DNA of 43,775 bases, taken from contig JALMLS010000399.1 in NCBI GenBank assembly GCA_038496445.1, forward strand, positions 1-43,775. Reading direction: 5' to 3'. Both the position numbers and the translations under genes were made by a program. This DNA comes from Trichosphaerium sp. ATCC 40318. Lineage: Eukaryota; Protista; Tubulinea. Numbering within the stretch: the first letter of the stretch is position 1; the number at the start of each line of letters is the position of its first letter. Shown piece by piece: positions 4,492-39,678 of the stretch. The notes below the pieces were generated by a model. The model was not told the origin of the DNA and made no database searches. It was given only the letters and a program-made list of their open reading frames with translations.

Positions 4492-4729
4492 TTTTAGGGT
4501 AACAAGTGAGATTCTGTCCTATTATTCTTCAAAAACGTACGTAGCAAGATCTGCAGAAGTACGAAGCATGTTCACTACGGGTTGAGTTCGTATTTTTTGT
4601 CAATTAAAAAGTAGACTTATTCCCAAAAAATTATCACGTGGCTACCTCTGATTGCGCTAAGCCAGTAAACAAAACTATGAACTCAATTTCCACGTGACTA
4701 ACGATTGCGTCAAACTACTGTTGGTTGTT

Positions 4730-17646: not shown

Positions 17647-18543
17647 TAGATGTTTTAGTCCTTGGATTATAAGAGTTACCTCTTTGTGTTGAGGTTTTTG
17701 CTTTCTTTCGTCTCGTATTATCATCTTTAGAAGTATCACGTGCTCTTTTGGCATTATCACGATATGAGGCAGCCTCCAAAGGAGAGAGCTTTGAAATATT
17801 TTGAGAATACCTTTGCACTTTTTCAAAATCACTTTCGGAGTTAAAAACCTTCATAACCAAAAATCCAGATCCACATTTGTATACCTGATATTGTTCCAAT
17901 CCAGTGAGTTTTTTTGAACATACGAAAACACACTGTTAGTGGGTAAATCACTAAATTTTGTATGCCATCTACGGAACATCAACATCCGTCCTCCAAATCC
18001 TAAACATATTCTATCACAAATAGTGCACATAGTCTCTTTGTCATCAAGAATGTCAAAACCTGATATAACAATCTTTATAGAGCCGTGAGCATAAATGTAA
18101 AATTTATATCTTTTGTCTCGAAAAATATCAATTTGTTTAGAAAATTGTGTATGTAAATTCTCCTTATTTTTTATGACCATGATAATTCTATTTGGATATT
18201 CTTTTGCAGTGATTATTTTAGAACTACCTTTGAAAGCATTAACTAGGTTCAAACGGTGGTCGTTGAATTCTTTTAGTTCGCCATTGGAAGAGTCTTCGTT
18301 GATTCCAAAATTTATAATCCAATAAAGCTCGTTGTTCATTTTATCAGCATTGTACCTCATAATCCGCTCTTCGGAGACTTTTTTGATACAATTCAAGATA
18401 ATGTTGTTGTCGATTTTTCGTTCTTCTACAGGAAACGTACTTGTAAGGTTTCGGACATCTTCAGCATCTTCCATATCAAAATCAGTAACACTTGAGTAAG
18501 AGGCTTCAGCCCCGCTGGTTATGGCAGTATCTTTCGGTTCCAT
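17639..18543 (-). CDS. LINE ORF1 (~300 aa; one apparent frameshift at the T-run near 17910)
   Basis: ORFs 17851-18543 and 17639-17899 join into one protein whose stop overlaps the ORF2 start region (ATG at 17646); position is typical of ORF1. Confidence 0.75.
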
Positions 18544-19144: not shown

Positions 19145-19954
19145 ATTTGTTGATAACAAAGTGCAGAGACGCAATACCGATCGAAAAAATATGCCTAGCA
19201 GAACTACCCAAACCAACGAAATACTGTAGCCTTACATATTTTCGCAGTATAACTCCATACTAGTACGTACGAGGGAAAACCAATCACGAGAGTGCTGTAG
19301 TTGAACCAAAACAAATAAAGCGGTAATTTGTAATATTAGTAGCGGTAAGACCGTGATAAGCCATCTTGCAAGGAGAATAGGCAAATAACCATCAACATAA
19401 TACTAAAAACGCTTTGTCGCATTTAATTCATTCTGGGCTTACCAGCTGTAAACACGTTTTAGCTTCTTGCTGAGTTTAAGATGTTGGCGTGGTCTTTGGT
19501 TTTGTCAAACTACACCTGGTGGTGTCGATACGCTCAGAAGTGGTGTGCTGTATTCACTAATCACTCTAAACACACAATCTATATTGTACGAAACCGGTTT
19601 TGGTGCCAAAATCCTTGAAAACTGTACGACATGCATCAGCTGATAACTTGCGGTTAGTACTGGCGGTGTTGGTTTTCCACTGGTACTGCAAACGAACAAA
19701 AATCAAACAGTACACTGGTTTTGGCATCGAAAATCTGATTGAATTCAAGCAACTAAAGAAGAGTTAGCAATCTGCCAATACACGCAAGACGTTCTTTGTG
19801 ATCTCCTTTTATTATTCCTGATTGAAAGATATCAATCAGATGGCCTGGTATCGGACTTTGGTTGAAAAGCGAAAACGACGAAATTACAGTATTTATTTCA
19901 TTATTTACAAACACAACAAAGTGAACAACAACAGCGAAAACAACTTCTCTAACA

Positions 19955-20445
19955 ATGAATCAAGCACACCAACGTATCGATAATGCTATAGTAGACTTGT
20001 TCGAGAATTTCTCTTCCGAAGCCTATGATAGATTGGGCAACGAACTAGAAGCCGAATACGACGTCAATATACCTGCCACAGCTGGAAGGAGTCGCCCTGC
20101 TAATCATTCGGCTGAAGCAATACAAGTCATGGAAGAATATCCTTACAACTCTTTATTTGGAAAAATCAATCATTTGAAATTTTTTGTTTTTTCTTTCTTC
20201 TTGTTTTAATCTTCACACATCGTTCTCCTTAACTCTTACTCACTTGGTATACACCTAACATACCTGAGCCATACCCTAAGTATCATGAGAAGCTCGTACT
20301 CGCAAGAGACTCTGGTCTAACTGTAGCACAAGTTAGTACTTGGTTTGCTAACATGCGCGCACGCCGTGGACACACCAGAACCAAAAAATGCACCGAGGAT
20401 TCAATAGCAGCCACTCAAACCGAAAGATTAGTCGATACTGAATAA
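19955..20445 (+). CDS. TALE homeodomain protein, short class (S1); exons 19955-20136 and 20244-20445
   Basis: Splicing the AT-AC intron gives ...[48 protein letters not shown] (PYP loop, WFxN). Confidence 0.88.
20137..20243 (+). other. U12-type (minor spliceosome) AT-AC intron
   Basis: 5' ATATCCTT, branch TCCTTAAC at 20226-20233, 3' AC 10 nt later; removal restores the homeodomain. Confidence 0.92.
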
Positions 20446-20917
20446 AAACAGTAGCATTGACGTAATTCAATAGTGAGATAGTATTATGTAATGCAAATAA
20501 ACTGACAGCTTGATATTCGCAACTCGTAGTAATTTTATTCTTTTTTTGGACTTTTTTTGTACCACTTTTTAAACTATCGCGTTCGGGTTTTAAACAACAG
20601 TTTGCCTTAGAATATTATCTAAAGCGTACCTTCGTAACCACTAGAAAGCGTAATCTGCTACGTTGATAGAATTCTAATTGATTAGTTCGAAATCAATCTA
20701 TTGCTCTCAACGGCTCTTATATTCGCCGCTATCAATCACCTCACGCTGTACCAACACTCTCAAACTACCACCAGATGATTGCTAAACACGGGCAAAAGCA
20801 ACTGTAGCTTTGAGAAAATACAACGCCGATAATCTTTCAGATTCTAATTTTATTCTTGACATACTATAATACATTTTCCAACATTACCAAAAATGGAACG
20901 CAGGAAGAAGTCTTAAA

Positions 20918-22583
20918 CTACAACAATGCTAAATGAAGCTGTAGGGATACTTCTTTGTTCTTTAACGATGTAGCTTTACCCAAAGCATCTCGTCCAACAG
21001 TTAAAATTTGTTCCCAATCATTAACAACAGCAGAAGCATGCGTTAAAGTATCGCCTAAAGCTTTAGAAGCGGTTATAAGCTTCTGTTGATCATCTATTAT
21101 CCTTGTAGACTTTTGAAGTAGAACACTCGCTTCTTCTAGCTTTGTTCTAACTTGTGGTTGATCTAGCTTAACATTATCACGAACTCTCATCATTTGAGCG
21201 ACTTGGTTCACTTTCACGCTCATTTTTTTGTATTTTTCGAGACAAGCCGTTAATTCCTTTTCAAATGAAAACAAGTTTGTGGCTTGCACAGAAACAATAG
21301 AGTCACCGAAAGCCTAAACGGAAACTCAGAGCGAACAAAAAAAAGACAAAGAGGATAAAAAAGAAGTGATTGATTTTACAGATCTGTAAATTCCTGCGGT
21401 TGTTGGTACTGAAAACTCACCTTTTGTTTGCTGTTTTCCAGTTCAGTAGATTGTTTTTTGAGCTGTGTACGAAGTTGTGAAACATTCTTTGATACAGCGT
21501 AAATTTCACCCTAGGGAATCGTGTCAGCGTGCACAATTAGTTCGTAAGAGTCGTACGAGCGTATTTGCTGTATTCGCTTTTTTGGCGATTGCTGCATTTT
21601 TGTTCATGAGTTGCCATTGAAGGAGTTGGGTTTGTAGAAGCTCTATACGCTTCATTTTGGTGTCCTTAGACTTTTCCATTCCCATTCGGACTCGCTACAA
21701 AAAAAATAAATAAACATTCTAAAAACAAGTTGTTCCGGGCTTCTACACGAACAGAAAAAATAGAAAAAAATGCCACGCTATGCACATCATATTAATGTAC
21801 TCATAGAAAACTTTTGAGCTTCAAACGATTTGATACAAACGCGCGAAAAATCGGTAAATAAAAATAGCATTTTAAATCCGAACGTACTGTCGTTAACTTT
21901 GAACGTTGCGGTTTGTTTTGTGCTGGTTTGGTAGTAGTATTGACTCTACGCTTTCTTACAACAGGAGTTTTTGTAAGAAAAGCTCTGGCCTGATTTCTCG
22001 CATTTTCACTTGCAAACGCGCTATTTCGTACTGGTTTGCGCTTCTTCATCGAAGAACGAAGCGTACCAGCTACTACCGGCTTTGGCTTTCGTTTGTGGGC
22101 CCAGTCACCTGTATGGTGGCCGTGAGTCGTCATTTCAAAGCTTTGATTTTAACGTACGTGTTATCATCGTTGCGCGTCTTCCATTTGGCGCTGGTTGGCG
22201 TTTTTGAAGAGCAGCAGGAAGCATTGTAGCTCTTCGTGTTTGTAGTGGCGGAAGTTGAGTAAGTGGCTTCCTGGTTTTCTTTGTGGTTGATGATGGCTGC
22301 ATATAACGCGAAGCAACATGTTTAACTACAATTCAGCGTGAGCAATTTTACCGTTATTCTTTCTTTACCTCTTCTACGTTTCGCTGTAGACGGTGCTGCA
22401 GTGCGTTTTGGTACAGTTTTTCGGTTATACGGCGTCTCAAGCAGAATATCATCAGTAGGTAGCCGTCGTTGCTTTTTTGCTAATAAATATAAGGTTTGAA
22501 GGTGGTTTTATTAGCGTTTTACTTGTTGAGCTAAATAATCGCTTTTGAACTGATCCAAATGGCGTTTGCGAAGACAGAGACAT
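20918..22583 (-). CDS. Multi-exon gene of unknown function: basic low-complexity N-terminal part and coiled-coil C-terminal part
   Basis: ATG 22583, several GT-AG introns (e.g. 22480-22522), exon ORFs 21801-22133 and 20918-21289 (heptad-like). Exon structure is not fully resolved. Confidence 0.5.
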
Positions 22584-22748
22584 GATACAATCAACGCGGG
22601 AAACAAATCAAGTGGTGTTTTCAAACGAAGTCATTTTTTTTTTTGTACATTGGTTTATTGACGCATAGGCAGCCCATTTACATTTTTATGAGTATCATAG
22701 TACTCGTACAAGTAAGTGATGAGCTAGTGTCGTCGCACGTGAAGAATT

Positions 22749-23288
22749 TTACTCTTCTTCAGTCTTTTTAGCGCGTTTAGCGGTCTGTTGCCTTTCCAGT
22801 TCTTCCTGGGCCTTGCGTATCTTGTAGGCCTTCTTGGTATCGCCACGGCGACGGCGGGTGTTGGTGAACCATACGCTCACTTGAGAGACTGATAGTCCTG
22901 TAGTTGTAGCAAGTTCTTCTTTGACGTCAGTTTCTGGGTATGGCAGAGGTAGATGAGCTTGGTACCATGTACGTTAGAGTTAAGGAGGAGAAGATTGAAA
23001 AAGCAGAAAAATGATTGATTAAAAAGGATATAAGTCCATGGTAGCAATAGCATCAGCGTTGTGGTTTGCGGGGCGGTTATTACCAGTTATTGGAGGAATT
23101 CTAACGTCGTAGTTGTTTTCGTGGTCCTGTCTAATGGTTGGGGAGTAATCGTTTAGGTCTTGACCGTCAAGTAGCCCAGTCACTAAATGATCAACATCAG
23201 ACTCTATCATCGCTAATTTTTGCAATCCTTTGCGAACTGCTTCGTTTTCGAGAGTGTTTTGCGGTTGTTGTTGTTGAGATGCTGCCAT
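22749..23288 (-). CDS. TALE homeodomain protein, short class (S2); exons 23288-23032 and 22968-22749
   Basis: Spliced product ...AIATMDLWYQAHLPLPYPETDVKEELATTTGLSVSQVSVWFTNTRRRRGDT. Confidence 0.9.
22969..23031 (-). other. U12-type AT-AC intron (63 nt)
   Basis: 5' ATATCCTTT, branch TCCTTAAC (22986-22979), 3' AC 10 nt later; same codon position and phase 2 as the S1 intron. Confidence 0.92.
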
Positions 23289-23751
23289 TGTTGTTGAAAG
23301 TTGTTTTTATGCAAGTTATGCCGATAAAACTTTGGCATGAAAAGTCTCTAATCACTCAACAAGTTGTACCTGAATAAAAATTATGGGCACAGCCTAACGG
23401 AGGCAGTATTTAGACGCTTGTTGAGTGTTTTCAAACCTTTCTACTTTTGGAGAAAACATATTTCGAGTTATTACACCTCTAGTTAGGGTCGTGTACGTAT
23501 TCTGAGACAGACGCGCGCATTTCCGTAATTTGCTTTAAAATAAAATAAATGATTGATACCGTAAAATCTCATATTCCAGTCTTATCTACCTTACGCGTTA
23601 GTATAAACTTGTAGGAGTAAAAAACGAGTTTGAAGAGAAACCGGGATTGTCGCCAAATTTGGAGACTTTGGGTGGTAGACTTTCACATTCAAATTCATCT
23701 ATCTATCATTCGTAATCCATCAACAACTCGTCAACGACTCTTAAACGAAAA

Positions 23752-25144
23752 ATGGCTGAACGCACCGAAGATACCGCTCGTATTAATGAAGAAGTACTCA
23801 ATCTGGCAAAAGCCTTCCAAAAATCTGTAATAATCACTCCAAAACAACCAATTCCCGAAGTTGTACCCCAGATAACAAAAGATGAAGTATTTGCAATGTT
23901 TGCCGAGCATATAACCAGCGAACTCATGGTTCAAAAAGTTACTTGGTTATTCTCGCAATACGTTAACGCTCTTACGCAACTTGAAGCCATCGTAAATACC
24001 AAGGTTGAAAACCTATCACGTGAGCTATCCAGCCCAGCTATGGTTGCGTTGATTCCAAGCGAATTGAAGAAATTGAAATTGCACATCGTTTCAATCGAAT
24101 ACAACTCAGTACGCCTTAAATACCAGGAGAGACTTGCCAGAGCTATTACTCAAGCAATTGAATATCAACGCACTCTTCCTGAGCAAACTAGACGAATTCC
24201 TCCTCGCGCGCACAGAATTCTTACCAATTGGCTCTTTGTACACGCTGCAGTACGTATATTTGTTTCTTTCGTTCAACCTTTGTTATGATTGATACTAATT
24301 ATTGTCATAGAATCCTTATCCAACCGAGGCCGAGAGACAGAAGCTTGGCTATGTTTGCAACTTGAAATGGGCTCGAGTCAAGACATGGTTCAACAACAAC
24401 AGGAATCGTCGCCGTGAAGATTTGGCTGCATGGCTTGTTGCACGTGGTGTTGTACCAGTTCCAAACGCTCAAGGTCGTCGCAAAAGAAATCGTGCTGCTG
24501 CACCTGGGCGTACACCTGTAGCCATGCCTGCTCGTGCGCCTGTAGCCACTCCTGCGCGTGCACCTGTAGCTGTACCTGGGGGCGCACCTGTAGCCAGACC
24601 TGCTCGTAAACCTGTAGCATCTCCTTCACATAGCGCCACTCCAGCTACCCCTCAGCGTAGACCTAATCTGAAGAAGATTAAGAAAGAGAAGAATTACACC
24701 GAGAAAACACCAACCACAACTCCAGCTAATCAATCAAATGTACACTCAATGCCACCTTCGCCAGCTGTCAACAACGCTGTCAATACAGTCTTTCCAATGA
24801 CAAGTACGCTTGTTTTTACTACTCTCTAAGCCTTTCTTACTTGCTTAGCTACGTTTCCACCCGCCATTCTCACTGCTCCAGTCCTAGATGATGCGTTCAT
24901 CAAAACTGAAACCAATTTTCTAAACCATGGAATGATAACTGATGGAGAGGAACCAATGGAACTTGAGCTACCTATATTTCAAGACCCTCCCGAAATGCTA
25001 TTTAGCCCGATGGGAGAACTCGTAGTATCTGACGAGATGCTCCTTGACACTGATGATATCATCGACCACAGTTTTGGTGAACTTGTAACTGGTTTCTTAA
25101 ACGAGATGGCAGACCAATTTGTCTTTCGTGATCCTAAACCATAA
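23752..25144 (+). CDS. TALE homeodomain protein, long PBC-like class (L1); introns 24250-24310 and 24804-24848
   Basis: Spliced ILTNWLFVHAA-NPYPTEAERQKLGYVCNLKWARVKTWFNNNRNRRR; helical N-domain, Pro-rich linker, acidic C-terminus. Confidence 0.9.
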
Positions 25145-25706
25145 GTTAGTTTTTTGGAGTATATTCCTGTGACACAGAAATAAAATCAAACTCAATATAT
25201 ATCTTGTTTATGTGCTTGTACCACTTTCCTCGTCTCTTATATAGCCTTATAGCACCTTAAGATCTGTTGATTCCGCTAAAGTAATTGCCGTTTGCACGTA
25301 TGAGATGGATTCGGTGATGATTGATTCAAGATTGATTTTTAACATAATCTTTATCGAAATACGCCCAGAACATCGAATAGTGTACGTAGAGTTCATGTAG
25401 ATGAGTTTTAAAAGTTTCTGGAAAGAAACTTTCGAACGTTACCAAATATGGAGAAGACGTTGGTGAGGACTCGCTTTATGAACTAAAAAATGAATATAAA
25501 GTGTTATATCACCGTGTAAAAGTTCTATCAATGGTTGTAAAGTGATATCAATCAACGTACGTAAGTTTTCGTGGATATTTGTAAAAAAAAATCTATCAAA
25601 ACCAATCAACACTGAAAACGAATTTGGCCACAAAACTTTTTACACTCAAATACAGTCAAATAAAAATCATTCCAACATCATCAAACAACAACAACAGCAC
25701 CTCAAC

Positions 25707-27145
25707 ATGGCCGAAAACAATCCAAAAGACCGTTCTAGTACCAAACAAAGCGAAGTTGATGAGTTGACTAAGCTTTTCGCTTCTGCAATGTACATCCAAT
25801 CACCTGATGGTGTCGACATTGTGAAACAACTCACGAAACAAGAAGTATTCAACAGATTCGAGAACAAGATTACAACCGACTTGCTCATCGAAAAAGTATC
25901 ATGGCTGTACTCTCAATATGTCATCTCTTTAGTCCGTCTCGAGACTATTCTCAGTAGACATCAACAAGTAGTAAAACAAGAGCTATCTAAAGATCAAGTG
26001 GTATCTACAATGACTCCAGAATCGATAAAGAAGCATATTCAACTTCTAAATATAGCATGTAATCGTGCAAGACTTGTGTATCAACAACAACTCTTCTTGT
26101 CAATTGTGAGTACAATTGAACGTCAAGCAAGTCTTCCAGCAGGCACAAGAAAGATTCCATCACGTGCCAAGAGAATCCTCACCAACTGGTTATTTGAACA
26201 CGCCACTGTACGTATATTTTACACAGCTGTTCAGTATCAAATAGTTGATACTCACCTTTGTTTTAGAACCCTTATCCAACTCAAGCTGAACGTGAAAAGT
26301 TGGCTTTCATTTGTGATATGAAATGTGCTAGAGTCAAGACTTGGTTCAACAACAACCGCAATCGCCGTCGTGAAGATTTGGAGAACTGGATTGATCAGCA
26401 AAACCTCGCAGAAAACCATGTGCCAAGACGTAGAAGGAACCAACGTAGGCGCAACCCAAACCCTCGACCAGCCAACCCAGTGGCTATTCCTACCCTACCA
26501 GCTCCAGCTACTATTCTTGCCGCCCCAACTCGCCAAGTCAAGCCACCAGTAACTATTCCTACTCCACGTACACGCGCAGCTGTTCCATGTTGTCCTAAAA
26601 TCAAAAAAGAACCTAAAAAAGTTCAACGATCATCAACTTCTCCTTCACCTCATCCACCATGTATTCTAGCGCCAACACTTCCCTGTATCAGATCTATAAC
26701 TGCTTTCAATGCCCTGGCTCATCCAATACCTTTAGTGAACAACGAGACTGTACCTCAACCAACCTTAGGTACGTCTTAGAGAAACCTGCATCCGAAATAT
26801 TTGCTAACTCTTTGCATAGTTGAAGTGAAGCGTGAAGAAGTACTATGTGCTCCAACGGACAGATACTGCTTCTCAATAATTAACACTTTTCTCACCAGTG
26901 GTATGGATGGTCCAGATGACGAAGATGTGTCAGGCTTAGCGCCAGTTTATGGCTCATTGCCAGTGATGACAATCGATCCATTTGGAATACTCTCTCAAGG
27001 AACCGTTCCTCATTTATCAACTGAAGGTCTATCCTCAGAGAACGCTGAACAAACTGTAGACGCTTTCGTTAATTCTGTAGCGGATAACTTTGTTCTTAAA
27101 GGATTTGAGGATTCCTTGGATGAAATGGATGAAGATAAAAAGTGA
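25707..27145 (+). CDS. TALE homeodomain protein, long class (L2); introns 26208-26266 and 26769-26819
   Basis: ILTNWLFEHAT-NPYPTQAEREKLAFICDMKCARVKTWFNNNRNRRR; same exon structure as L1. Confidence 0.9.
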
Positions 27146-27485
27146 AAGTTCGATTAACGTAACTGCAAAATCTGCAGTGAGCATAAAAGTAATAAATATC
27201 AAGTTTGTATTCACTTCTTTCTTTGCTTTAACGTTCTGTGATAAACCACTTGCTAAAATTGAACGTATCAACGCACTATCGACGCTCAAGTCACGTTTTG
27301 AAAGCGAATTTAGCAGATTTGTTATTTTATGTTTAAAAACCTCTGTAGCGTCATTTGCGCTTTATCTAATGAATTAAAATAGGTTGTGAAGTTTTCAGTA
27401 TTCGCCATATTAGGAATATTCCTGTAAGTCAACAAAACGTACACAAAACAACTCAATCAGCTTGCAATCGCTCTAATATCAATCA

Positions 27486-28778
27486 ATGACAACATCTATC
27501 AACTCTAGCACTAAAATCGATAAAGGCGTTGCTGAACTAGCTAATTACTTTACAAAAACAAGTTTTATCCAATCTCCAGTCGAAGTAGAACTTGTTAAAC
27601 AACTTAGCAAACAACAAGTATTTAATTACTTTAAACCTTTAATAACAGACAAAATACTAGATGAGAAGGTATCTTGGTTGTACTCTCAGTACGTAGTATC
27701 ACTTCGACGGCTTGAAACAAGTGTGATTAAAAGCCAAGAGAAATTTGCACGTGAACTCTCCCAAACACCCTCATTATTAGCTCACAGTTCAACATTCCGT
27801 TATGCTCAAGTACATTTCATATCAGTAGAGTGCAATGAGATGAGGACAAAATATCAAGAACAACTATTCTCAGCAATAGAATTCACACATGATCGCTATT
27901 CGAAACTCCCTATTAGAAAATCCAGACGTTTTCCTAAACGTGCTCTACGTATCCTGACACACTGGCTGTTTGAAAATGCTGCAGTAAGTAATGCCCTTTC
28001 TAATGTCTTATGATACTTACATCATGTACAGGATACTCACCCAACCTTCGAAGAGATCCATAAGCTAGCCTTTGTTTGTGATTTGGAATGTGCTCAGGTA
28101 AAGAGATGGATAATAAACAACGCTATACGTAGAAAAGAAGATTTGACAACTTTTATGCAAGAGAAAGAAGCTAGGGAGAATAAACAACTGCTGGAGAAAA
28201 ATAAGAACACAGCTACTAGTAGACCGGATTCTTTTATTCAATTTCCTAGTCAAACAATCGAACTGCAACATAGCAAACATCAAACTATAGACCTTCCTGT
28301 ACATCTTGCGTCAAAAGATAAGGAATATGAGGTTCCTCTAGTACCACCACGTGTTCAGCACGTAAATCATAGTGATAGTATGCTGATGCAAGATGCAAAC
28401 ACAAATTCGCAATCTCTTGACAACGAAACAGGTACATACCACAGCAGCTGTTTGTTAACAATACACTGACTATTTTTAGCGCCAGTATCTCTAGATCAAG
28501 GTGACTTAGGTGTTTCTTGGCCTGTATTACAACAAAATGACATAGTTCTAAACAATGATTGGGCAACAGATGACAACTCAGGTTTTTGGAACAAGCTTGA
28601 GACCAATGAAGCAGAACACGAAATCTTTTGGGAAGATCAATTGAACAATAGCACAACAGCAGAGCCAGTATATATGGAGTTTACTATGGGTGATATGCTC
28701 CTATCAGATCCACTCTATACAACACCAGAACCAGAATTTCTTGTATTAGGCTATAGTGGCGAAGTACTTAGTCTATAA
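27486..28778 (+). CDS. Long-class TALE paralogue with a degenerate recognition helix (L3); introns 27984-28031 and 28432-28479
   Basis: KVSWLYSQYV N-domain intact; homeodomain ILTHWLFENAA-DTHPT...QVKRWIINNAIRR; spliced ORF open to TAA at 28778. Confidence 0.85.
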
Positions 28779-29226
28779 TTGTAAACATACAATGATCATT
28801 TCAATACAATACTTAGCTGCCTTTATCTACATATTTCTTTCATTCTTAAGTGTACTGTTCTAGCAATACTAACCTTTAGAGACTCGAAAAGTGATACATC
28901 AATCGTTCTGGTACGGCAACTGTTCGAAAATGTAACAAGCTTGTTTCTCGAACTGGTTGTTTATGTAGGCTTGTGTTGTAGATAAATGTCATTTTTGATG
29001 TAAATCAATATTGGTATCGTTGTATCAACGATTTACAATGCTAGACATTGGCGTGGTACACGTGATTCAAGAAAGTTTTATTGACATAAAGGAAAGCAAC
29101 AATCTAGGTTTACACAAAGGATAATATCTAATGTTTTCGAAATGCAAAGTGGGTAATTAACAAGACAATCTTAAATTCAACCAGTTGTTTTATTGGAATA
29201 TTTGACAAACAGATCCCAGTATGAAG

Positions 29227-30553
29227 TTACTCTTCTTTGATCTCTTTTTCTTCAGAATTCATTGCATCATAGAAAGGTTGATAGCCACAACTATCAAGCA
29301 CAAAGTCATCAACAACGGTAGTTAGGAAAGACTCGACTTTAATCTCAGCGTTTTCAGCTGTAAAGTCATCGATCGGTAGCTGAGGAACGGTAGCATCAGG
29401 TAAGGTTCCAAATGGTTCGAGCATCATCAAGTTATGTCCATACGCTGGTGACATATCAGTCATTTCTTCGTCATCTGAATAATCAATGCCGTAGGTGAGA
29501 AAGTTGTTGTTCATGAAGGACTGTCTATTAGTTTGTGTAGCGATTGGTTTCTCTTCTTTTACTTCAACTAGGAAAAGAGTGAGTCGTAAAAAGTACACGT
29601 GATTTTAATACGTACCAAAAGTTGGCTGAGGTGCAGCGTTGCTGTTTACGACAGGTACTGGAGACGTAGGAGATGCAGTAGCCGCTACAGTATTGGTTTG
29701 GAGAGTAGTTGGTGGAACAGGAGCAGCTACTGGTGTTGGCGGATTGGCTGGAATCAGTGCAGGAGCAGCCGTTGGAGCTGGAGGGTTGGCTGGTCGAGGG
29801 TTTGGATTGCGCCTACGTTGGTCCCCTCTGCGTGTTGGCACTGGGTTTGGTACGAGGTTGTTTTGATCAATCCAGTTCACCAAAGCTTCACGACGACGAT
29901 TACGGTTGTTGTTGAACCAAGTCTTGACTCTCGCACATGTCATATCACAAATGAAAGCCAACTTTTCACGTTCAGCTTGAGTTGGATAAGGGTTCTAAAA
30001 CAAACGTGAGTGTCAAATATTTGAGACAGAATAACTTGTAAAATATGCGTACAGTGGCGTGTTCAAATAACCAGTTGGTGAGGATTCTCTTGGCACGTGA
30101 TGGAATCTTTCTTGTGCCTGCTGGAAGACGTGCTTGACGTTCGATTGTGCTCACAATTGACAAGAAGAGTTGTTGTTGATACACAAGTCTTGCACGATTA
30201 CATGCTGTATTTAGAAGTTGAATATGCTTCTTTATCGATTCTGGAGTCATTGTAGATACCACTTGATCTTTGGATAGCTCTTGTTTTACTGCTTCCTGGT
30301 TTCTACTAAGAGTAGTCTCAAGACGGACCAAAGAGATTACATATTGAGAGTACAGCCATGATACTTTTTCGACAAGAATAGCGGAAGTAATCTCGTTCGC
30401 GAATCTGTTGAATACTTCTTGTCTTGTGAGTTGTTTCACAATGTCGACACCATCAGGTGATTGGATGTACATTGCAGAAGCGAAAAGCTTAGTCAAGTCA
30501 TCAACTTCGCTTTGTTTGGTACTAGAACGGTCTTTTGGATTGTTTTCGGCCAT
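29227..30553 (-). CDS. TALE homeodomain protein, long class (L4), inverted paralogue of L2; introns 30052-29995 and 29615-29568
   Basis: Near-identical to L2 in the N-terminus and homeodomain (WFNNNRNRRR); diverged linker and C-terminus. Confidence 0.9.
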
Positions 30554-31291
30554 GTTGAGGTGTTGTTGTTGTTGTTTGATGATATTGGAATGATATTTAT
30601 TTGACTGTATTTGAGTGCAAAAAGTTTCGTGGCCAAATTCGTTTTCAGTGTTGATTGGTTTTGATAGATTTTTTTTACAAATATCCACGAAAACTTACGT
30701 ACGTTGATTGATATCACTTTATATTCATTTTTTAGTTCATAAAGCGAGTCTTCACCAACTCTTCTCCATATTTGGTAACGTTCGAAAGTCTCTTTCCAGA
30801 AACTTTTAAAACTCATCTACATGAACTCTACGTACACTTTTCGATAATTCCGGGCGTATTTTGACAAAGAAAATGTTAAAAATCAATCTTGAACCAATCA
30901 TCACGGAATCCATTTCTAATTTCATAAGCGTGACTATAGAACTCGGTATTATGCTCATATCCCGTTTTAACTATTAAAACTAACTGTTTACGGGTTTCTG
31001 CTTTAATTTTAGAAAAGTAAATAGCAGCCTATTTAAACTGTATAACTAGGCGCCATATTTGAGGTTATAGCTATTCTACGCGATTGCTAAGCACTAAACA
31101 CGTTTCCGACCGAAATTTGTTAATGTTACAACCAATTTTAATAATTATAACCTACAACGTCTTATCCACGTATAGTATGTATCCGGGTTTGTATTTTCAG
31201 TTTTCGCCTAATTAGGAATAGAGAAGTAAAAGTTTTAGTGTACGTTGAGAGAAACTACTCAATCAACACGCTTTCAAGCTCTCAACAACCA

Positions 31292-32507
31292 ATGAACAAA
31301 TCTACCAACAAACCAAAGCGTAAAGACCAGGATATTGTAGAATTGACTAAAAGTTTTCAATCATCTGTTACTATTAGTCCTACACGCGCAAATGGAATTG
31401 TAAGACAATTGAAGAAAGAAGAAGTATTAGAAACGTTTAAAGGGCATATAACGAGCAAAATACTTGAAGAGAAGGTCTCTTGGTTGTATTCTCAGTATGT
31501 GAAAGAGCTAGTGCGTATGGAGACATTGATAAAGAAGAGCCAAGATGAAACAGCACGTGAACTGTCTGAATCATCTATCGGTGTAGCTTTATCAAAAAAA
31601 GACAAACAAAAGCAACTGGAACTGTTGAGTTTACAGTGCAACAAAATTAGAGTTCTCAAACAAGAGCGATTATTCAAAGCCATCGTCTTTACATTGGACA
31701 GACACGCTAAGCTGCCCAAACAAACAGGAAGACTGCACCCTGAACGTGCTATACGTATTCTAACACACTGGCTATTTACAAATGCAGCTGTACATACACA
31801 ACAAAGCAATTCTTTTTCAAGCAAAAAAACACTTGTTTCTCACTTTGTATTTAGGATCCTCACCCAACCACAGAAGAGGTCGCAGAACTCGCTTTTGCAT
31901 GTGATTTGAAACGCTGTCAGGTAAAGAGGCGGATAACTACAAATGCACGTAACCGAAAGCCCGACTTGGAGGTCTTTCTTGATCCAACCAAAAAAAAGGA
32001 GGAAGAAAAAAAGCCGGTCATCAGTACAAATACTGAAGCTATTGAGCGTTGTATTGTGCCACCAACAAAAGTAGAGACTATAATCAAAGAGATAGTAGTT
32101 GAGCCTTGTATGCCAACATCTCCACAGCGAACAGTTATCAAAATACAACCAGAAACGGACATTTTACCTGAACAGAATTCGTGTAACAAATCAACTCTAA
32201 CTCATCCAGAACAAAGCAAACAACAAGGTACAAAATATAAGTACTCTTCTTTTATTAACAGTTGTTCTAAGATAAACAGGTCTCATTTAGTGTAGACTCA
32301 ATAGTGTACGATAGTTCTTGGGATACACTTGAAACAGAACAAAACAATGCTTTGTTTTGGGAACGTCAAAATGACACATTGACAGAAATGTCAAATGATT
32401 CCTTCGCATCTACAACGTATGAATTTAACTGTATGGGCACGCAATACATCTCAGACATACTGGAATTCCCTATACTAGACTATAACGAAGACCTAGAAGA
32501 TTTGTAA
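31292..32507 (+). CDS. Long-class TALE paralogue with a degenerate recognition helix (L5); introns 31790-31854 and 32228-~32295
   Basis: KVSWLYSQYV N-domain; ILTHWLFTNAA-DPHPT...QVKRRITTNARNR; the second acceptor is ambiguous (32271 or 32295). Confidence 0.83.
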
Positions 32508-33453
32508 TCCGTTCCAAATAAAAAAACCACACCATATTTTGATTCGGATTCGGAAGATAGCCGCGTAGAAAAGGCTTATTCTAGGTTTTTGCAGAATTTT
32601 ACTTCATCGTCGCTTGTTTCGGTCTAGATTTGGTTTATTGAGTTTAAAACAGTATAACAATCGTAACACGTCCTGAATCACACGTCTCGTCTACGACAAT
32701 GATTTAAACACAAAACCTGCGGTGAATTTTTGTTTAACTCACCAATCCCGCCCTTGTTTCCAACAATGCGTGCCACACCATAATGAACTGTATTTCAGCT
32801 GGAAAGAGCGTAGTAAAATTCCAAAACAAGCAAGTTCTGAACTGTGCATTTTACGTTCTTACCACACTTGAAACGAGATAACCATACGCCATTAAAACAT
32901 TATACAAAGCTTTTAAGCGTATTATACTATTGGCAAAAAAAAAAAGAATACGAAGCTAACAAACCTCGCTTGCTATTATTCACATGATGTAAAACTACGC
33001 GATTATTGACCAATGCGAGTCTTTAAAATACTTCAAATATTATTTTGAATGTACTAACACTACAGATCTGTAACAAACTCACACTTATTAATTGAACTCT
33101 TATCAACGATCTAAAGATTGATTTTTATTTGTCAGAATAAACAGAATTCGGGTAAAGTTTGAGACAGTGAGTGAAAAAATCTTTCGATCTTAAACTTTCA
33201 AAAACCAAAACATCTTCTTTGGCTATTTGAAAGCTTCTAAGGCCGCCTCTGATTATGATTGATAAGTACTTTTAATTGAAATAAAAACACTCCCTTACGC
33301 TCGGATATACTACATTTATTGACATAGCATGGTTGGAATTGTAAATGGACGTACAACCAAATTAGGATGAATGAATTTTCGAGTTTTTTAGCCTAATATA
33401 TCATTATCAACCAAACGTACAAGCTCAACAACAACTCCTCAATCAAGAATACC

Positions 33454-34737
33454 ATGACAGAAACCACCTCTATGAATAACAAAGCATTCAATCAACAACT
33501 AGAAAACGTAGCTGCAAAGACTAAAAGCCTTACTCTAAGTCAGCTAAACAACAACTCCATCACTCCTCCGATCTCTAGACCAGCTTTCTTCCAAAAGTTC
33601 AACCAAGCAGTAAACGGAAACCTTTCTCTCGAGAAGCTATCATTCCTTTACGATAGATACGTCTTAGCGCTAGAAGACCTCGAAAGTCAAGTAACTAAAC
33701 AAGTTGCAAAACTTGAGCGCGTTCTTACAACTCCACCAGCATCGAACTTTATCAACGAAGCAACACGTGTTCAAAAGCTCAATTCTCTCTCTGCTAAATT
33801 CAATACTGTTCGTGTTGCTCAACAAACAAAGTTGTTTCAACTTGCTGCTAAGGCAATCGAACGTTGTGCTCTTATCCCAACATCAAGAAACCTCTCACCA
33901 CGTGCAAAGAGAATTCTAACCCACTGGCTCTTCCAAAATGTTAACGTACGTCCTTTTCTCTATCTCGCTTTGTCTATTTTAGTATCGCCTATCAATCACT
34001 CACTTTACGTTTAGAATCCTTGTCCAACTGACGCTCAAGTGCAAACTCTTGCTTACGTATGTGACATCGAACAAGTGAAAGTAAAAAACTGGTTCAACAA
34101 CAACAGACATCGACGCTCAGAGGACCTTAGAACCTTCCGTGTAAACAACGGTATCGCTCCTAATGCTCCCACACGCGTAGTACAACCATGTGATAACGAG
34201 AAATCGACCGCTCCTCCTAACCGCAAAATTCTTCGTGCCAATCGTGTCAAACCTGCTACCAACAAAGCAGCAACACCAACGCCAGTACCAATGCAAGTGC
34301 CTATCGTGATTAAAGATGAACCAAAAGAAACAGCGCCTAAATCTCCTCCTGCCACCCTCCCTCTCATTCTGCCTTCTCCAGTGATCAGCGGCCCAGCTGA
34401 AGTGCAACCTGTCGAAAGTACGTCTTTTATAAACAAACAGTTTCTGTTGTTTGACATAATTCTTACTTTGTTTTTTGCTATAGTTACTGTTCTCGAAGAA
34501 GGCTTTTCGGCTCCAGTTATTGACTTGGATGGTTCCGCTTACTTTCCAGAAGGCGAGGATTTTCTCACAACTGGTATGATCGAAGAATATCAGCCATTTG
34601 GCAGCTTTGGTTTTCTGAATGCAGGAAATAACATGGATGCTGCGGGCACAGAAGTTGCCCCTGTCTCTGATACGATGTTTATGAACGGAATGGTGGATGA
34701 ATACGTTTTCAATGAAGACTCTCCTCAAGATCTCTAA
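33454..34737 (+). CDS. TALE homeodomain protein, long class (L6); introns 33946-34014 and 34418-34483
   Basis: KLSFLYDRYV N-domain; ILTHWLFQNVN-NPCPTDAQVQTLAYVCDIEQVKVKNWFNNNRHRR. Confidence 0.88.
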
Positions 34738-35262
34738 AGAACAATATCACACAATACCTCGTAACGACTTGTCTCAATAAAATGTCACTTTTTATGATTG
34801 TTACAATTTGTTTGCCCTTGGTTTATGCCGATAATGACACCAATATTACTTATTGAGTTTGTTATGTGCCTTGATTGATTTCCGCGCTTCAAATTTTGAA
34901 ATGTAGCGCTTGTTACAATTTGGCTGAAAGTATGTTCCTGTTATCGAGCTAAACTGCCCTGACACTTACTTCTACGCATGTAGAGCGTAATAAAGTGATG
35001 TATAACGTAAAGTAAAGCAAAATAAATAAATAAAAAGAATTCGTACTAAAACTACATGCAGTTGTACAAGCAGACATTTCTATCCACACAGTTTTCCAAA
35101 TCTAGAAAGAGTAGAAGATGTATGTTTCATCAATCAGGTAGTGTTATCGCTCTGTTAAACCGCATTGCCTTTAGAACCACTCCTGTTAGTACTTTTCGGA
35201 ACATACAGCGTAAGTATACTAATTTCGGCAAGTACTTTTGGGTTGTTATTTTAGATGGCCTA

Positions 35263-35688
35263 CTACTTCTTTTTGCTTGTTTTAGAGCGTTTGGCGGGTC
35301 GGTTTTGTTCTTTCGTTTGTTTTTGTAGTCGCCGCTTACGCCTTGCCTTACGGTTGTTAAACCAAGCATTGACCTGCTTAAACGTATTCCCGGTTGCTTC
35401 AGCAAGCTGCATCTTTTCTGATTTATTCGGCATTGGATGAGGCAAATGAGCTATAAACCAATCTTCTAGCACTTTGGTAACTTCAGGAGGAAACGCACTA
35501 CCTCTGGCTACTTGCACTTTTTCTTTTTCTTCTGTGATGCATACTTCGTCGTAGATCTCGCTACCTACGGTAATAGTGTCCATTAGGCCTCTAATTTCGT
35601 CGTCTATTTCATCTTCAAGGTTAATTATGTTATTACAAAAGTTTGTAATTTGGTTTACGGTCACAGTTCCGTAATGTTCTTCTACCAT
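35263..35688 (-). CDS. TALE homeodomain protein, short class (S3), intronless
   Basis: FPPEVTKVLEDWFIAHLPHPMPNKSEKMQLAEATGNTFKQVNAWFNNRKARR; first ATG at 35688. Confidence 0.87.
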   Translation of the reverse strand: MVEEHYGTVTVNQITNFCNNIINLEDEIDDEIRGLMDTITVGSEIYDEVCITEEKEKVQVARGSAFPPEVTKVLEDWFIAHLPHPMPNKSEKMQLAEATGNTFKQVNAWFNNRKARRKRRLQKQTKEQNRPAKRSKTSKKK

Positions 35689-36260
35689 TTGTACGTCTTT
35701 TGCTGCAAACCAGATTGTTGAAATTTGTATCTTTTTGTACAAGACAGAACTTTCAACGAAAATAATGAAGGGCTGTAAGCCAATTTTAATGTCACGGTAA
35801 TTGCGACCATATATAGGTTATTATAATAATCAGGGAGGTACGCTTAGACTTCATTTTATCTTACTGTAGGATAGATTTTGGCGTTTTTCTACTAAACAAA
35901 AAAGTTCCACTAGCATTAGTAGTATCATACGCTATATCTTGCACTTTTTCTGTATTGTCATGAGGTGGAAAATAAAGCATCAATATTTGGTACACTACCA
36001 CAAAAAGGAGAATCACGTATTCTCCCACAGTGCTATGTTAAAGGCCAATTAAACCGTAAGGCAGCAGAAATAACCAAGCAAAAAAAATAACAGACAGTTT
36101 TTCTCCGGCGTCTGGGCGTGTTGACAAAATAATGACATGCAAAAAGAGAACTTGAGAATGATGCTAGGCAGTTATAATAGTATTTAAAGAACCAAACGTA
36201 GACAAAAATATGATAACAATAGGTTTATTTATATAAGAACAAGATTATATTGTACAGATT

Positions 36261-36767
36261 CTATTCTTTTTTTTCTTTTTTGATCTCAACCTTAGCTCTC
36301 TTGTTGGCGGCTTTCTCCCTGTCAATATCGGCTTGCATCTGTTGCAAACGACGCTTCAAGTTTGCTCTAGTATCTCCATGACGAGAGCGGGTATTACTGA
36401 ACCAGACACTGACTTGTGCAACAGTTAATCCGGTCACCTCAGCCAAAGAGATTTTATCCTCCTTTTTTGGATAAGGTATTGGAAGGTGAGCATTATACCA
36501 ATTTTGGAGAACTTGAACGACTTGAGGAGGAAAATTAGCGTTCCTGTGAGGTCCTGCAGCTGTTGGAATTCTATTATCGTAGTTTGCTTCTACTTGAGCG
36601 TAATTACCAACATCTCCAAGTGAGAGCGTTTCAAGGTGGGCTATGGCTGTGTCGTCGAGTTCTTGTTCCAATTGTAGTATATTCACGAGTTTGTCACAAA
36701 GATCTTGCCGTTCTGCGAGAGTCATGTTTTTGAGATTCTGCTTGTTGTTTGTCTTTTGTTCTGCCAT
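36261..36767 (-). CDS. TALE homeodomain protein, short class (S4), intronless
   Basis: [56 protein letters not shown]; first ATG at 36767. Confidence 0.9.
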
Positions 36768-37203: not shown

Positions 37204-39678
37204 TCAACGTTTTCGACCTCTACCTTTACGTTTTGGTCTTTTCTTTGGTGATGAAGTTGAATTACCAACGTTAGGGTTCGAAAGAGATACGACTTGGCCT
37301 TCTTTTATTTCTTTTTGATCCATCGCTTCTATTTTATCCTTTGCCTCAATATACAGCATTAAATCACGCACTTGTTCCTAATAAAATACTTAGTTTTAAA
37401 TATCCATCAACAGAAAGAATGATTGACAAGTTCGAAAAAAAAAAAAAAAAAATTGCCCAAATTAGGAATGTACCTGCAACTCTTTAATTTTCTTATCTTT
37501 ATCCATATCTGTATCAGCTTCACGGGATTTCAAGTATTCTATCTTCTTACGATACTCATCTTGATTTTCTTGCATTGCCTTATTGACATTTCGTAAAAAC
37601 TCAGATTCTTGCATTAAATCATTCATCTTCTTCTCCAAGTCCTTTGTACGGCATTTTAAACGTTGTTTTTCGCTTTCAACAGTTTGTAGACGCTTTGCGC
37701 AATCTATTTTCTGACCAAGCAGTTGAGCATACTGATCCTCCATAAACGCTAGTTTACCGGTTTTCTGGTGATGCACCATTGCTAGCTGCTTTTCGAAGTA
37801 GTCTCGCTGTGTTTCGAGCTGCGCTGTAAGAAGATAGGAGTACTCCAAGGATAAAGCATCTAGCTTACCCTACAAATGATTTAGACAGAGTTTGGAAAAT
37901 GTATCGGGCGAAGAAAAGTCTGGAAAATCTCTAGAATTCTTGATTTTCCACTACGCGTACCATATACTCCTTTCCTTTAGCCTTAGAGTACTTTGGATCT
38001 TCTTCACCGCTCATTCCAGGGTCTGGTAATGCGATTAATTTACCGTCAGCTTCATTTCTGACAAGTCTACAAAAAAATCAGAAAAACTGCTATAAAACTG
38101 AATAAAAGTAGCGCAAACACTACAAAGCATTGAGTGCTCCACAAACGTGCACAAGAGTTCAAAAAAATTCTACAAAAAGCCATCTACGCGTACCTATGCA
38201 CGTAGCCATCACTAGTATAATCCCAGACACGTTGCGTTTCCAACTCGAGTGCATAAGTATGTCTGCTTTGCTCGAAATGTTGAAAAGCGTGGGAGTTAAC
38301 ATAGCGTCCACAACCCACGTGACCACATACTAAGCATATCCAAAGAGCCTTTGACGAACCACAACCATGGCATTGAGTCTTTGAACCATTTGGTTGTTGA
38401 ACATGACGACAAACTGGACAAGAATTATCTTCTCGCCACTTCCTTAGGCAGTGGCAATGAAAGTAGTGGTTGCATAGTATAGTAACAATACCAGTTGCTG
38501 AACCATCCAATCGCTCTAGAATACACGTTGGTAAGCATTAATCGCCAAAAAAATAACAAATGTTTTTTGCTTTTTTTATGGATTAAACTGAATGTCTCCG
38601 GACGATTGTCGCATACTTGCCCTTAATTGACAAGCACACTGAAAGATACGCTTTAGGAATTTTTTATTGCTCCTTGGAGGCTGTGACACCGATTGAATTG
38701 CGGCGCACACGGTTTAAGAGCTTAAAATAAAAAAACAGAAAAAAAATTGTACCTAAGCACACCGGACACGTTGGTAGCTCCTTTTCCATCTGATGTGGGA
38801 ATATAGATGACTTTGAGTCAACAAAGTCAACTCCTTTGGCGAATACTGGATAAGCTACTTCATCACCCTGTAAACAATAAGTCAGAATACCCTCAGAGGT
38901 GTCAAAATGTGTCAAATGACATTTTCGGATAAAAAACCCAGAAAGGCTTAATTATTTAGATTTTGGGCATATTAACGCCCCTCATGACTCAAAATACTGT
39001 CAAGTAGGGGAGCTGGATATCCCGTATTACGTTTTTTTCGCATTTATGAAAAAAAAAAACTGATCACATGTTCATCACGTGAGAAGTAACTTACCAATGA
39101 AGAGAATTCTTTTCCATAATAATGGAGATAGAATTCATCAGCATGCTTCTGCTCTCTAAAATTAGCCAACACCATGTAACGTTGACTTGATGCATCACTA
39201 GTGAGGTAAAAAAGTCAGACAAAATGAATTTCAGGTGACGTCATAATAACTGGGCGAATTGACGTGAATCAAAGCTATTTTCATACCTTAATACGCGCAT
39301 GCCATCCATGTCTGCTATAAATGCTCCACACCAAGTAATAAAATCAGCAACCAAAATATAACTCGGTACTGCGAGTATTAGGATCAATCGTGAAGTTAGC
39401 TTCTAATTTGCGGTGGTTAGCGTGGATTTGACAAGAAATAACGGTAAATGCCGTTTTTAACGTACAGGAAGTTTACCGCGCTCATGTACGATACCATGCG
39501 CTTCTGCATCTCGCAATAAATGAATCACACCCTTAGTAATATGCACCGAAGGGTTTCCTGCAAAAAAATGGACAGTGCTACCACACACACCATTAGAACT
39601 CGTTTGATCTTTTTTAGGTGATTGGAGCGCCATTGCTTCTGTTTTAGGGTCTTCACACTGTACTACCACTGAGAACAT
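37204..39678 (-). CDS. BRAP: BRCA1-associated protein BRAP2/IMP-like E3 ubiquitin ligase (multi-exon)
   Basis: BRAP2 domain (ILAVPSY...DFITWCG, RYMVL), RING-H2 ELPTCPVCLERLD...LCNHYFHCHCL...CPVCR, ZnF-UBP LWICLVCGHVGCGRY...HA..HF...HTYALELETQRVWDY, coiled coil EYSYLLTAQLETQRDYFE...QVRDLM. Confidence 0.93.

Follow-up and report, generated by a model that had tools for sequence, protein, structure and literature searches.

A lineage-specific cluster of ten TALE homeobox genes of two structural classes in Trichosphaerium, with tandem TGAT sites concentrated inside the cluster

The locus described here is a lineage-specific tandem cluster of ten genes for TALE-homeodomain transcription factors, belonging to two structural classes. 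Within the window (the whole 43.8-kb stretch of DNA analysed), motif scan and tblastn detected exactly ten homeodomain-coding sites, all located between positions 20233 and 36542 and none outside, and complete gene models were obtained for all ten, in agreement with the ten-gene cluster predicted by the first-pass annotation. The interval, which runs from the start codon of S1 (19955) to that of S4 (36767), contains six long genes (L1-L6, 368-442 aa) and four short genes (S1-S4, 127-168 aa), and all ten reading frames are intact (Table 1). The proposed division into two classes was also confirmed, since the S genes are set apart by homeodomain sequence, intron position and architecture, and the L genes form a single clade. 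The S genes are located on both sides of the L array, and S2/L1 is the only divergently arranged S-L pair, with a 463-bp promoter in common. The first-pass annotation had counted one other gene inside the cluster; open reading frames are indeed present between S1 and S2, but the two of them matched no Pfam family and have no RNA support. A LINE element adjoins the cluster. No description of this cluster was found in the literature searched, and homeobox genes receive no mention in the main text of the paper on the Trichosphaerium genome.

Table 1. Positions of the cluster genes and associated sequence features in the window
Feature	Position	Strand	Description
TGATTGAT sites	19831..35136		16 exact copies (tandem TGAT cores), mostly in promoters and introns of cluster genes
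S1	19955..20445	+	short TALE gene, 127 aa; exons 19955-20136, 20244-20445; Homeobox_KN 45.7 bits
Non-homeobox ORFs	about 20900..22330	-	131 and 115 aa; candidate coiled-coil gene outside the TALE family
S2	22749..23288	-	short TALE gene, 158 aa; exons 23288-23032, 22968-22749; Homeobox_KN 56.1 bits
L1	23752..25144	+	long TALE gene, 428 aa; exons 23752-24249, 24311-24803, 24849-25144; Homeobox_KN 32 bits
L2/L4 inverted repeat	25302..26478 (L2 arm); 29783-30916 (L4 arm)	+ (L2 arm)	promoter, exon 1, intron 1, homeobox; 88-99% identical
L2	25707..27145	+	long TALE gene, 442 aa; exons 25707-26207, 26267-26768, 26820-27145; Homeobox_KN 34 bits
L3	27486..28778	+	long gene, 398 aa; intact ORF, degenerate recognition helix; Homeobox_KN 14.1 bits
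L4	29227..30553	-	long TALE gene, 406 aa, expressed; exons 30553-30053, 29994-29616, 29567-29227
L5	31292..32507	+	long gene, 368 aa; intact ORF; Homeobox_KN 17.4 bits
L6	33454..34737	+	long TALE gene, 382 aa; exons 33454-33945, 34015-34417, 34484-34737
S3	35263..35688	-	short TALE gene, 141 aa, intronless; Homeobox_KN 42.4 bits
S4	36261..36767	-	short TALE gene, 168 aa, intronless; Homeobox_KN 51.3 bits; PBX1 E 1e-10

The two-intron structure ascribed to the L genes was recovered in all six spliced models, each of which consists of three exons joined in frame and ends at a stop codon: intron 1 (phase 0) lies within the homeodomain between WLFxxAA and NPYP, and intron 2 (phase 1) upstream of the acidic tail. 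Among the S genes, S1 and S2 carry one AT-AC intron each, of 107 nt (phase 2, in helix 1 of the homeodomain) and 63 nt, respectively, at the identical position, and removal of the intron restores the homeodomain frame in both genes. Both introns begin with ATATCCTT and contain TCCTTAAC, after which 10 nt remain, the last two being AC; they thus show all the features by which U12-type introns were called here (5′ ATATCCTT, a TCCTTAAC branch site 10-15 nt from the 3′ end, and AT-AC termini), and are predicted to be removed by the minor spliceosome.

The Pfam Homeobox_KN profile (PF05920; curated cut-off, 24 bits) matched eight of the ten proteins (L1, L2, L4, L6 and S1-S4) with scores of 26.5-56.1 bits, and L3 and L5, which scored below the cut-off, are members of the family by paralogy only. 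The three-residue TALE loop between helices 1 and 2 (positions 23a-c) was found in all ten, and the distance from position 1 to W48 is 50 residues throughout, versus 47 in a typical homeodomain. The key residues W48, F49, N51, R53 and R55 are complete in L1, L2, L4, L6, S1, S2 and S4, with K53 in S3. The recognition helix of L3 reads W-I-I-N-N-A at positions 48-53, with W48, N51 and R55 kept among the five, and all five are substituted in L5. In the homeodomain phylogeny, a check suggested by the first-pass annotation, the L homeodomains formed one long-branched clade (support 100/99), in which L3 and L5 are sisters (100/98). The homeodomains of the S class are similar to generic TALE domains, with PBX as the best match among solved structures, and S4 could be aligned with PBX1/Exd through the loop without a gap. 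Pfam searches at E<=1 detected neither PBC-A/PBC-B (PF03792) in any L exon 1, S3 or S4, nor MEINOX domains (Meis_PKNOX_N, KNOX1/KNOX2, ELK) in the N-terminal region of any L or S protein, and no Pfam match to the POX (SKY plus BELL) domain was obtained for L or S proteins.

Outside the homeodomain, the L proteins had been described as carrying a helical N-terminal domain, a Pro-rich linker and an acidic tail. The helical domain was reproduced as a long helical hairpin in the AF2 model (pLDDT 71.5), which adjoins the homeodomain without a linker, and a short conserved extension follows helix 3. The acidic tail is present in every L protein: the final 90 residues have a net charge of -15 to -19 and include 6-11 aromatic ones. 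The linker was confirmed as Pro-rich and basic in L1, L2, L4 and L6, but this description does not apply to L3 and L5. The N-domains share 20-43% identity, versus 43-78% for the homeodomains, indicating a faster divergence of the N-domain, which is greatest in L6. A profile built from the six N-domains retrieved no protein at E<=0.001 among 1.84 billion, a result compatible with distant kinship beneath the reach of HMMER, and the search for structural matches was likewise negative. The C-termini of S2-S4 are basic (net charge +3 to +10), and in S4 an acidic N-terminal helix, a disordered linker, the homeodomain and a basic C-terminal helix follow one another.

The L genes are products of local duplication, and L2 and L4 are joined by a gene-conversion tract, in which the identity reaches 88-99% across 1.17 kb. 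The two genes lie in opposite orientation with L3 in between and differ in their 3′ halves. The dN/dS ratio of their N-domains is 0.31, indicating purifying selection, and therefore both copies are under constraint. In the one public RNA run containing the locus, contigs derived from L4 matched the genome exactly and lacked both introns; L4 is thus the sole gene with expression shown, and these contigs cannot tell whether the other nine are silent.

In an unbiased comparison of the cluster with its flanks, TGATTGAT was the top-ranked 8-mer. All 16 exact copies in the window fall within the cluster, against 2.88 expected, and none of 100 shuffles reached this number, the enrichment being measured within the 43.8-kb window of a 71-Mb genome. 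The sites are located 5-386 nt upstream of S1, S2, L1, L2, L3, L4 and L6 and within the introns of S1, S2, L1 and L6, and only one-mismatch variants were found upstream of L5, S3 and S4. The introns of S1 and S2 have in common a 12-nt block around TGATTGAT and are otherwise diverged. The same tandem site was obtained by site selection with PBX1, implying binding as a dimer (PMC6426973). If the DNA specificity of animal PBX may be carried over to the cluster homeodomains, which are unlike PBX at positions 50 and 54, then TGATTGAT would be a site for the cluster proteins themselves. Such a density of sites fits a self-regulating, dimer-binding switch; it is compatible with a role in the life cycle but is no proof of one.

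Taken together, the best explanation, to which we attach moderate confidence, is that the cluster forms a TALE module specific to this lineage, which controls its own activity and that of its members and binds DNA in the form of dimers. Dimers of the cluster proteins, be they L-S, L-L or S-S, would bind the TGAT-TGAT sites within the promoters and introns of the genes that encode them, and such self-binding could provide the feedback needed by a developmental or life-cycle switch. As to the parts played by the individual proteins, the 145-aa helical-hairpin domain adjoining the L homeodomain is a candidate dimerisation surface, the acidic and aromatic C-terminal tail is a candidate activation domain, and the S proteins, with their acidic N-terminal and basic C-terminal helices, may act as small TALE partners or modulators. 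Since L3 and L5 have lost DNA-contact residues but kept the N-domain and tail, they are putative competitors that do not bind DNA.

Two other accounts of the locus were considered. The L and S genes could be unrelated neighbouring TALE subfamilies brought together by ordinary tandem expansion and acting independently, for instance as L homodimers on TGATTGAT, in programmes of cell form or stress, with neither L-S partnership nor a role in sex. The local duplication of the L genes, the conversion tract between L2 and L4, and the LINE element beside the cluster are in favor of this account, as is the ability of PBX to self-associate through PBC-B and to select TGATTGAT without a partner class (PMC6426973). 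On the other hand, the S genes border the L array on both sides and carry TGATTGAT in their own introns and promoters; S and L genes therefore share a cis-code, which argues for common regulation, and we regard independent action as possible but rather doubtful. That most members are pseudogenes or assembly duplicates is very improbable and close to refuted. The degenerate recognition helices of L3 and L5 and the 88-99% identity of L2 and L4 over 1.17 kb might be read in this way, but all ten frames are intact over conserved splice sites in spite of the low N-domain identity, the L2/L4 pair shows constraint together with different 3′ halves, opposite orientation and an intervening gene, and L4 is transcribed and correctly spliced.

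The first-pass annotation favored a combinatorial L x S code with a mating-type or haploid-diploid function. On this view the cluster would be a homeodomain locus for mating type or zygote identity, in which L and S would depend on one another as partners across the two classes, pairing only between haplotypes or being expressed in different gamete types, and the heterodimer formed after fusion would start the diploid (schizont) program. The linkage of both classes within 17 kb, the S2/L1 divergent promoter resembling basidiomycete HD1/HD2 pairs, and the faster divergence of the L N-domains agree with this proposal, and basidiomycete HD1 mating-type clusters are among the protein language-model neighbours of S4 (scores 0.75-0.80), which we take as a lead only. 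In addition, Trichosphaerium is reported to alternate between gamont and schizont stages (PMC10521059). Against these points stand the expression of L4 in the sole public run containing the locus, with mRNA contigs showing no differences from the genome, the purifying rather than diversifying selection on L2/L4, the 6:4 ratio of mostly unpaired genes, unlike HD1/HD2 cassettes, the TALE nature of both classes, and the lack of a detectable PBC, MEINOX or POX domain. We thus consider a locus of this type improbable, and the weak pointers at hand lean against self/non-self recognition. The fuller version, in which L and S from different haplotypes or gametes pair, bind TGATTGAT, keep the cluster switched on through positive feedback and set off the schizont program, with L3/L5 as buffers, would be the amoebozoan counterpart of such loci, and is in our view equally unlikely. 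If true, it would extend the control of the haploid-diploid transition by TALE heterodimers to Amoebozoa and open the sexual cycle of Trichosphaerium, itself unconfirmed, to molecular study.

Dimers of TALE homeodomain proteins rank with the most ancient developmental switches of eukaryotes, and to our knowledge almost nothing is known of them in Amoebozoa. The self-regulating module preferred here brings together within 17 kb a TALE class peculiar to this lineage that evolves fast and has an unrecognisable N-domain, a short PBX-like class with predicted minor-spliceosome introns inside the homeobox, two decoy-like members and a concentrated tandem TGAT site, and offers a testable case of a TALE network regulating itself. 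Should TGATTGAT prove to be the site recognised by the cluster proteins, both the DNA specificity of TALE proteins and their binding as dimers would be conserved from animals to amoebae.

Among known systems, the animal PBC proteins (PBX/Exd), including the PBX-MEIS/PREP dimers, share with the cluster the TALE homeodomain with its three-residue loop, free of gaps between S4 and PBX1/Exd. The L proteins resemble PBX in the linker-free helical domain before the homeodomain (compare PBC-B) and in the extension past helix 3 (compare the PBX C-terminal helix), and the site selected by PBX1 is the one enriched in the cluster. Unlike PBX and MEIS, the cluster proteins gave no PBC, MEIS or PKNOX domain in Pfam and exhaustive profile searches, the L homeodomains form their own long-branched clade and differ from PBX at positions 50 and 54, and the genes are linked, those for PBX and MEIS being dispersed. 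A TALE heterodimer acting as haploid-to-diploid switch has its precedents in KNOX/BELL of plants, GSM1/GSP1 of Chlamydomonas and ORO/SAM of brown algae (PMC6219170). These systems resemble the cluster in having two structurally different TALE classes per genome, but the cluster proteins gave no match to a KNOX1/2, ELK, POX or PBL domain. We know of no linked multigene array of the partners in these three systems.

Basidiomycete HD1/HD2 loci (bE/bW, A-alpha/A-beta, SXI1/SXI2) have in common with the cluster the linked homeodomain paralogues of two classes with one divergent pair (here S2/L1), a variability that is higher in the N-terminal regions than in the homeodomain, and an acidic tail in one class and a basic tail in the other. 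In contrast to the fungal loci, which combine one TALE and one typical homeodomain, both classes of the cluster are TALE, the ratio is 6:4, and the eight genes besides S2/L1 are not divergently paired; HD1/HD2 loci are defined by multi-allelism and non-self pairing, and the L4 contigs of the one run containing the cluster are identical to the genome. Plant KNATM is a dominant-negative TALE derivative without a homeodomain, and L3 and L5, as judged from their sequences, appear similar in keeping a putative interaction domain and an intact frame with loss of key DNA-contact residues, but unlike KNATM they retain a degenerate homeodomain. Finally, the Iroquois genes of animals (IRX/Iro-C) are tandem TALE homeobox clusters arising from local duplication, but consist of three genes of a single class with the IRO box, whereas the cluster described here comprises ten genes of two classes, with decoy-like members and dense candidate binding sites for its own family.

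Six-frame motif scanning and tblastn over the whole 43.8-kb window, the latter with three homeodomains from the window itself as seeds, identified ten homeodomain-coding sites, all within 20233-36542 and none elsewhere in the window. Splice-aware gene models derived from the reading frames and splice sites gave six long TALE homeobox genes (L1-L6; proteins of 368-442 aa) and four short ones (S1-S4; 127-168 aa), as listed in the table together with the flanking features. The models bear out the first-pass annotation in the number of genes of each class and in the two-intron layout common to L1-L6, and the bounds that it set for the cluster, 19955-36767, coincide to the nucleotide with the start codons of S1 and S4. 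In all six L genes, intron 1 is a phase-0 GT-AG intron inside the homeodomain, with WLFxxAA before it and NPYP after it; intron 2 is a phase-1 GT-AG intron that precedes the C-terminal tail. Intron 2 of L6 (34418-34483, 66 nt) is in frame and stop-free, and its retention would add 22 residues without truncation. All ten ORFs are intact over conserved splice sites, and the divergence between paralogues is deep.

Genes of the TALE cluster and flanking features
Feature	Position	Strand	Description
F-box/LRR genes	207-7500		left flank; three genes in succession; LRR_6 with F-box or F-box-like matches
LINE-type retroelement	12871-18543	-	1.4 kb upstream of cluster; reverse-transcriptase ORF, RVT_1 E 9e-26 at 15667-16647
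S1	19955-20445	+	gene model, one AT-AC intron
ORFs between S1 and S2	20900-22330	-	unannotatable, no Pfam family; probably coiled-coil and basic protein
S2	23288-22749	-	gene model, one AT-AC intron
L1	23752-25144	+	spliced model
L2	25707-27145	+	spliced model
L3	27486-28778	+	spliced model
L4	30553-29227	-	spliced model
L5	31292-32507	+	spliced model
L6	33454-34737	+	spliced model
S3	35688-35263	-	gene model, intronless
S4	36767-36261	-	gene model, intronless
RING + zf-UBP (BRAP2-like) gene	37462-38510	-	right flank; coiled-coil exon
WRKY DNA-binding-domain gene	40532-41299	-	right flank; E 5.5e-13; WRKY domain uncommon outside plants

The cluster with its two classes is genuine, and it is unusual; no description of a TALE cluster in Amoebozoa was found in the literature searched. 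The GC content (37.69%) and mean intron length (75 nt) of the published Trichosphaerium genome agree with the window; homeobox genes are absent from the text of that paper, its tables give only a few unrelated homeobox proteins, and it places RNA-seq of single small, medium and large cells under BioProject PRJNA833396 (PMC10521059).

The TALE residue spacing is present in all ten cluster proteins, and L1, L2, L4, L6 and S1-S4 score above the curated cut-off of Pfam Homeobox_KN (24 bits), with L3 (14.1 bits) and L5 (17.4 bits) below it. S4 aligns with PBX1/Exd without gaps across the three-residue TALE loop (E 1e-10), followed by MEIS (3.5e-9) and then TGIF, with MAT-alpha2 far lower. A phylogeny of the homeodomains had been proposed as a check, and in a maximum-likelihood tree of the ten cluster homeodomains, PBX1 and four metagenomic TALE domains, the L side came out clearly, as a single long-branched clade (support 100/99) with L3 and L5 as a sister pair (100/98), while the S homeodomains grouped with PBX1 and the outgroups without a resolved branching order. 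This separation indicates that the two classes are real. The L genes are a private lineage that was duplicated locally, and the S homeodomains are nearer to generic TALE domains; from their placement in the tree they are not truncated L derivatives, and the differing intron positions of L and S carry the same message.

The strongest functional clue is the tandem-TGAT 8-mer site TGATTGAT, which is enriched in the cluster: the expectation was 2.88 +/- 1.84 copies for the window, which carries 16 exact ones, a number reached by 0 of 100 shuffles, and all 16 are located between 19831 and 35136, or 35% of the window. By our own arithmetic, the chance of 16 random sites all falling there is about 5e-8, or ~1e-7 when the L2 and L4 promoter sites are counted as one. 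In an unbiased k-mer comparison between cluster and flanks, TGATTGAT was the top 8-mer by a wide margin. It is not a repeat element, because the flanking bases vary between sites. A or T directly follows 15 of the 16. Copies are located upstream of S1 (121 nt), L2 (157 and 386 nt), L3 (5 nt), L4 (155 nt) and L6 (195 nt), in the 463-bp promoter common to S2 and L1, inside introns of S1, S2, L1 and L6, and at 20731 and 21367 in the S1-S2 interval, in the region of 20900-22330; one-mismatch variants are found 13-48 nt before the start codon of each L gene and also upstream of S4.

The introns of S1 (20137-20243) and S2 (22969-23031) interrupt homeodomain helix 1 at the same phase-2 site, start with ATATCCTT, carry TCCTTAAC followed by 10 nt, and terminate with AC, so that we classify them as predicted, textbook U12-type AT-AC introns; their excision brings the homeodomain back in frame. 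Introns of this type at first brought Physarum matA to mind; GC content and intron size point instead to Trichosphaerium, and the literature searched contained nothing on a homeodomain matA of Physarum. The block AATCAATCATTT occurs in both, and a 12-nt block around TGATTGAT is common to the two introns, the remainder having diverged.

The L proteins carry before the homeodomain an N-domain of about 145 aa, with an identity between paralogues of 20-43% except for L2/L4 (90%), the corresponding value for the L homeodomains being 43-78%. The helical nature claimed for this domain is supported by an AlphaFold2 model (mean pLDDT 71.5), in which two helices (57-92 and 103-141) form a long hairpin that continues directly into homeodomain helix 1. 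The claimed acidic tail also holds, the final 90 residues of every L protein having a net charge of -15 to -19 and 6-11 aromatics, a composition that suggests an acidic activation domain; the Pro-rich linker, which is basic here, is present in L1, L2, L4 and L6 but not in L3 and L5. In the model of S4, an acidic helix near the N-terminus (17-51) is joined to the homeodomain by a disordered linker, and a long basic helix makes up the C-terminal part; the C-termini of S2-S4 have a net charge of +3 to +10.

For database searches the exons of the spliced genes (L genes, S1 and S2) were entered separately. S4 gave no match in a word index of 5.8 billion proteins, exact-protein look-up found no record for S4 or a flanking F-box ORF, and no candidate came from a search with the homeodomain region of L6. 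A metagenome scan with the L pattern detected no locus; the S pattern detected ten loci, each with one generic TALE gene and none with a cluster. Two metagenome contigs (L007:1620-1826 and L008:2102-2308; GC 0.30) encode a homeodomain whose helix 3 is followed by RRGDT[HK], the C-terminal signature of the S type, but in which the three TALE loop residues are missing; it may be a relative of the S class outside TALE, from a different protist of low GC.

An inverted tract common to L2 and L4 (25302-26478 and 29783-30916; 88-99% identical) spans promoter, exon 1, intron 1 and homeobox, with L3 between its arms; the 3' halves of the two genes are only about 55-64% identical, and the tract is most simply explained by gene conversion or partial re-duplication. 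The 13 synonymous and 15 non-synonymous changes in exon 1 (dN/dS 0.31) indicate purifying selection; diversifying selection between L2 and L4 was rejected at this value. The contigs from the single public run with the locus are spliced and hence RNA-derived: one lacks intron 1, and another passes from exon 2 of L4 through exon 3 into its 3' UTR with zero mismatches. At all 30 listed differences from L2 the contigs have the L4 base, and the numbers of differences (17 and 18) match those between L2 and L4 over the same ranges; the contigs are therefore exact L4 mRNA, and L4 is transcribed and spliced as modelled. No contigs for L1, L2 proper or L3 were found in this run, although contigs cannot prove absence.

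Among the recognition-helix residues, L3 keeps W48, N51 and R55 and has I49 and A53, and L5 has lost W48, F49, N51, R53 and R55. In both, the N-domain, splice sites and acidic tail are preserved and a frame of about 370-400 codons stays open, which at such divergence is not expected of neutral sequence. On the simplest reading, L3 and L5 would be competitors without DNA binding.

TGATTGAT is a tandem TGAT-core pair recovered in PBX1 site selections, from which it was concluded that the PBX homeodomain requires a second homeodomain for stable binding (PMC6426973). Together with the enrichment in the cluster, this identity suggests a self-regulating TALE module whose proteins bind DNA as dimers, our preferred reading, for which we consider the chances evenly balanced. 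Plain expansion of the genes without any L-S partnership is rather unlikely. Still less probable, in our judgement quite improbable, is the mating-type or zygote-identity locus that the first-pass annotation had in view. Trichosphaerium is a marine amoeba with a reported, unconfirmed alternation of gamont and schizont (PMC10521059), and TALE heterodimers have deep precedent at the haploid-diploid transition (PMC6219170); linkage of both classes, the divergent S2/L1 pair, fast-evolving N-domains and complementary acidic and basic tails would all fit such a locus. However, no partner domain was recognised, L2/L4 are under purifying selection, the one run with the locus expresses L4 and displays no polymorphism, and the genes, in a 6:4 ratio, are mostly unpaired.

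The first-pass annotation had separately likened the L N-domain to PBC-B, for which the searches gave no support. PBC, Meis_PKNOX_N, KNOX1/2, ELK and POX had no Pfam match at E<=1 in any N-terminal region; a profile built from the N-domains of all six L proteins retrieved 0 of 1.84 billion representative proteins at E<=0.001 and nothing below E 0.06 among PDB sequences; an ESM Atlas feature search with the L1 N-domain gave no usable match; and fold searches with the modelled L N-domain yielded generic helical hairpins only (TM below 0.5, E above 0.6). A kinship with PBC may lie beneath the sensitivity of HMMER, and the layout of the L proteins resembles that of PBC, with a helical domain directly adjoining the homeodomain and, after helix 3, a conserved extension of the form EDLxxW/F.
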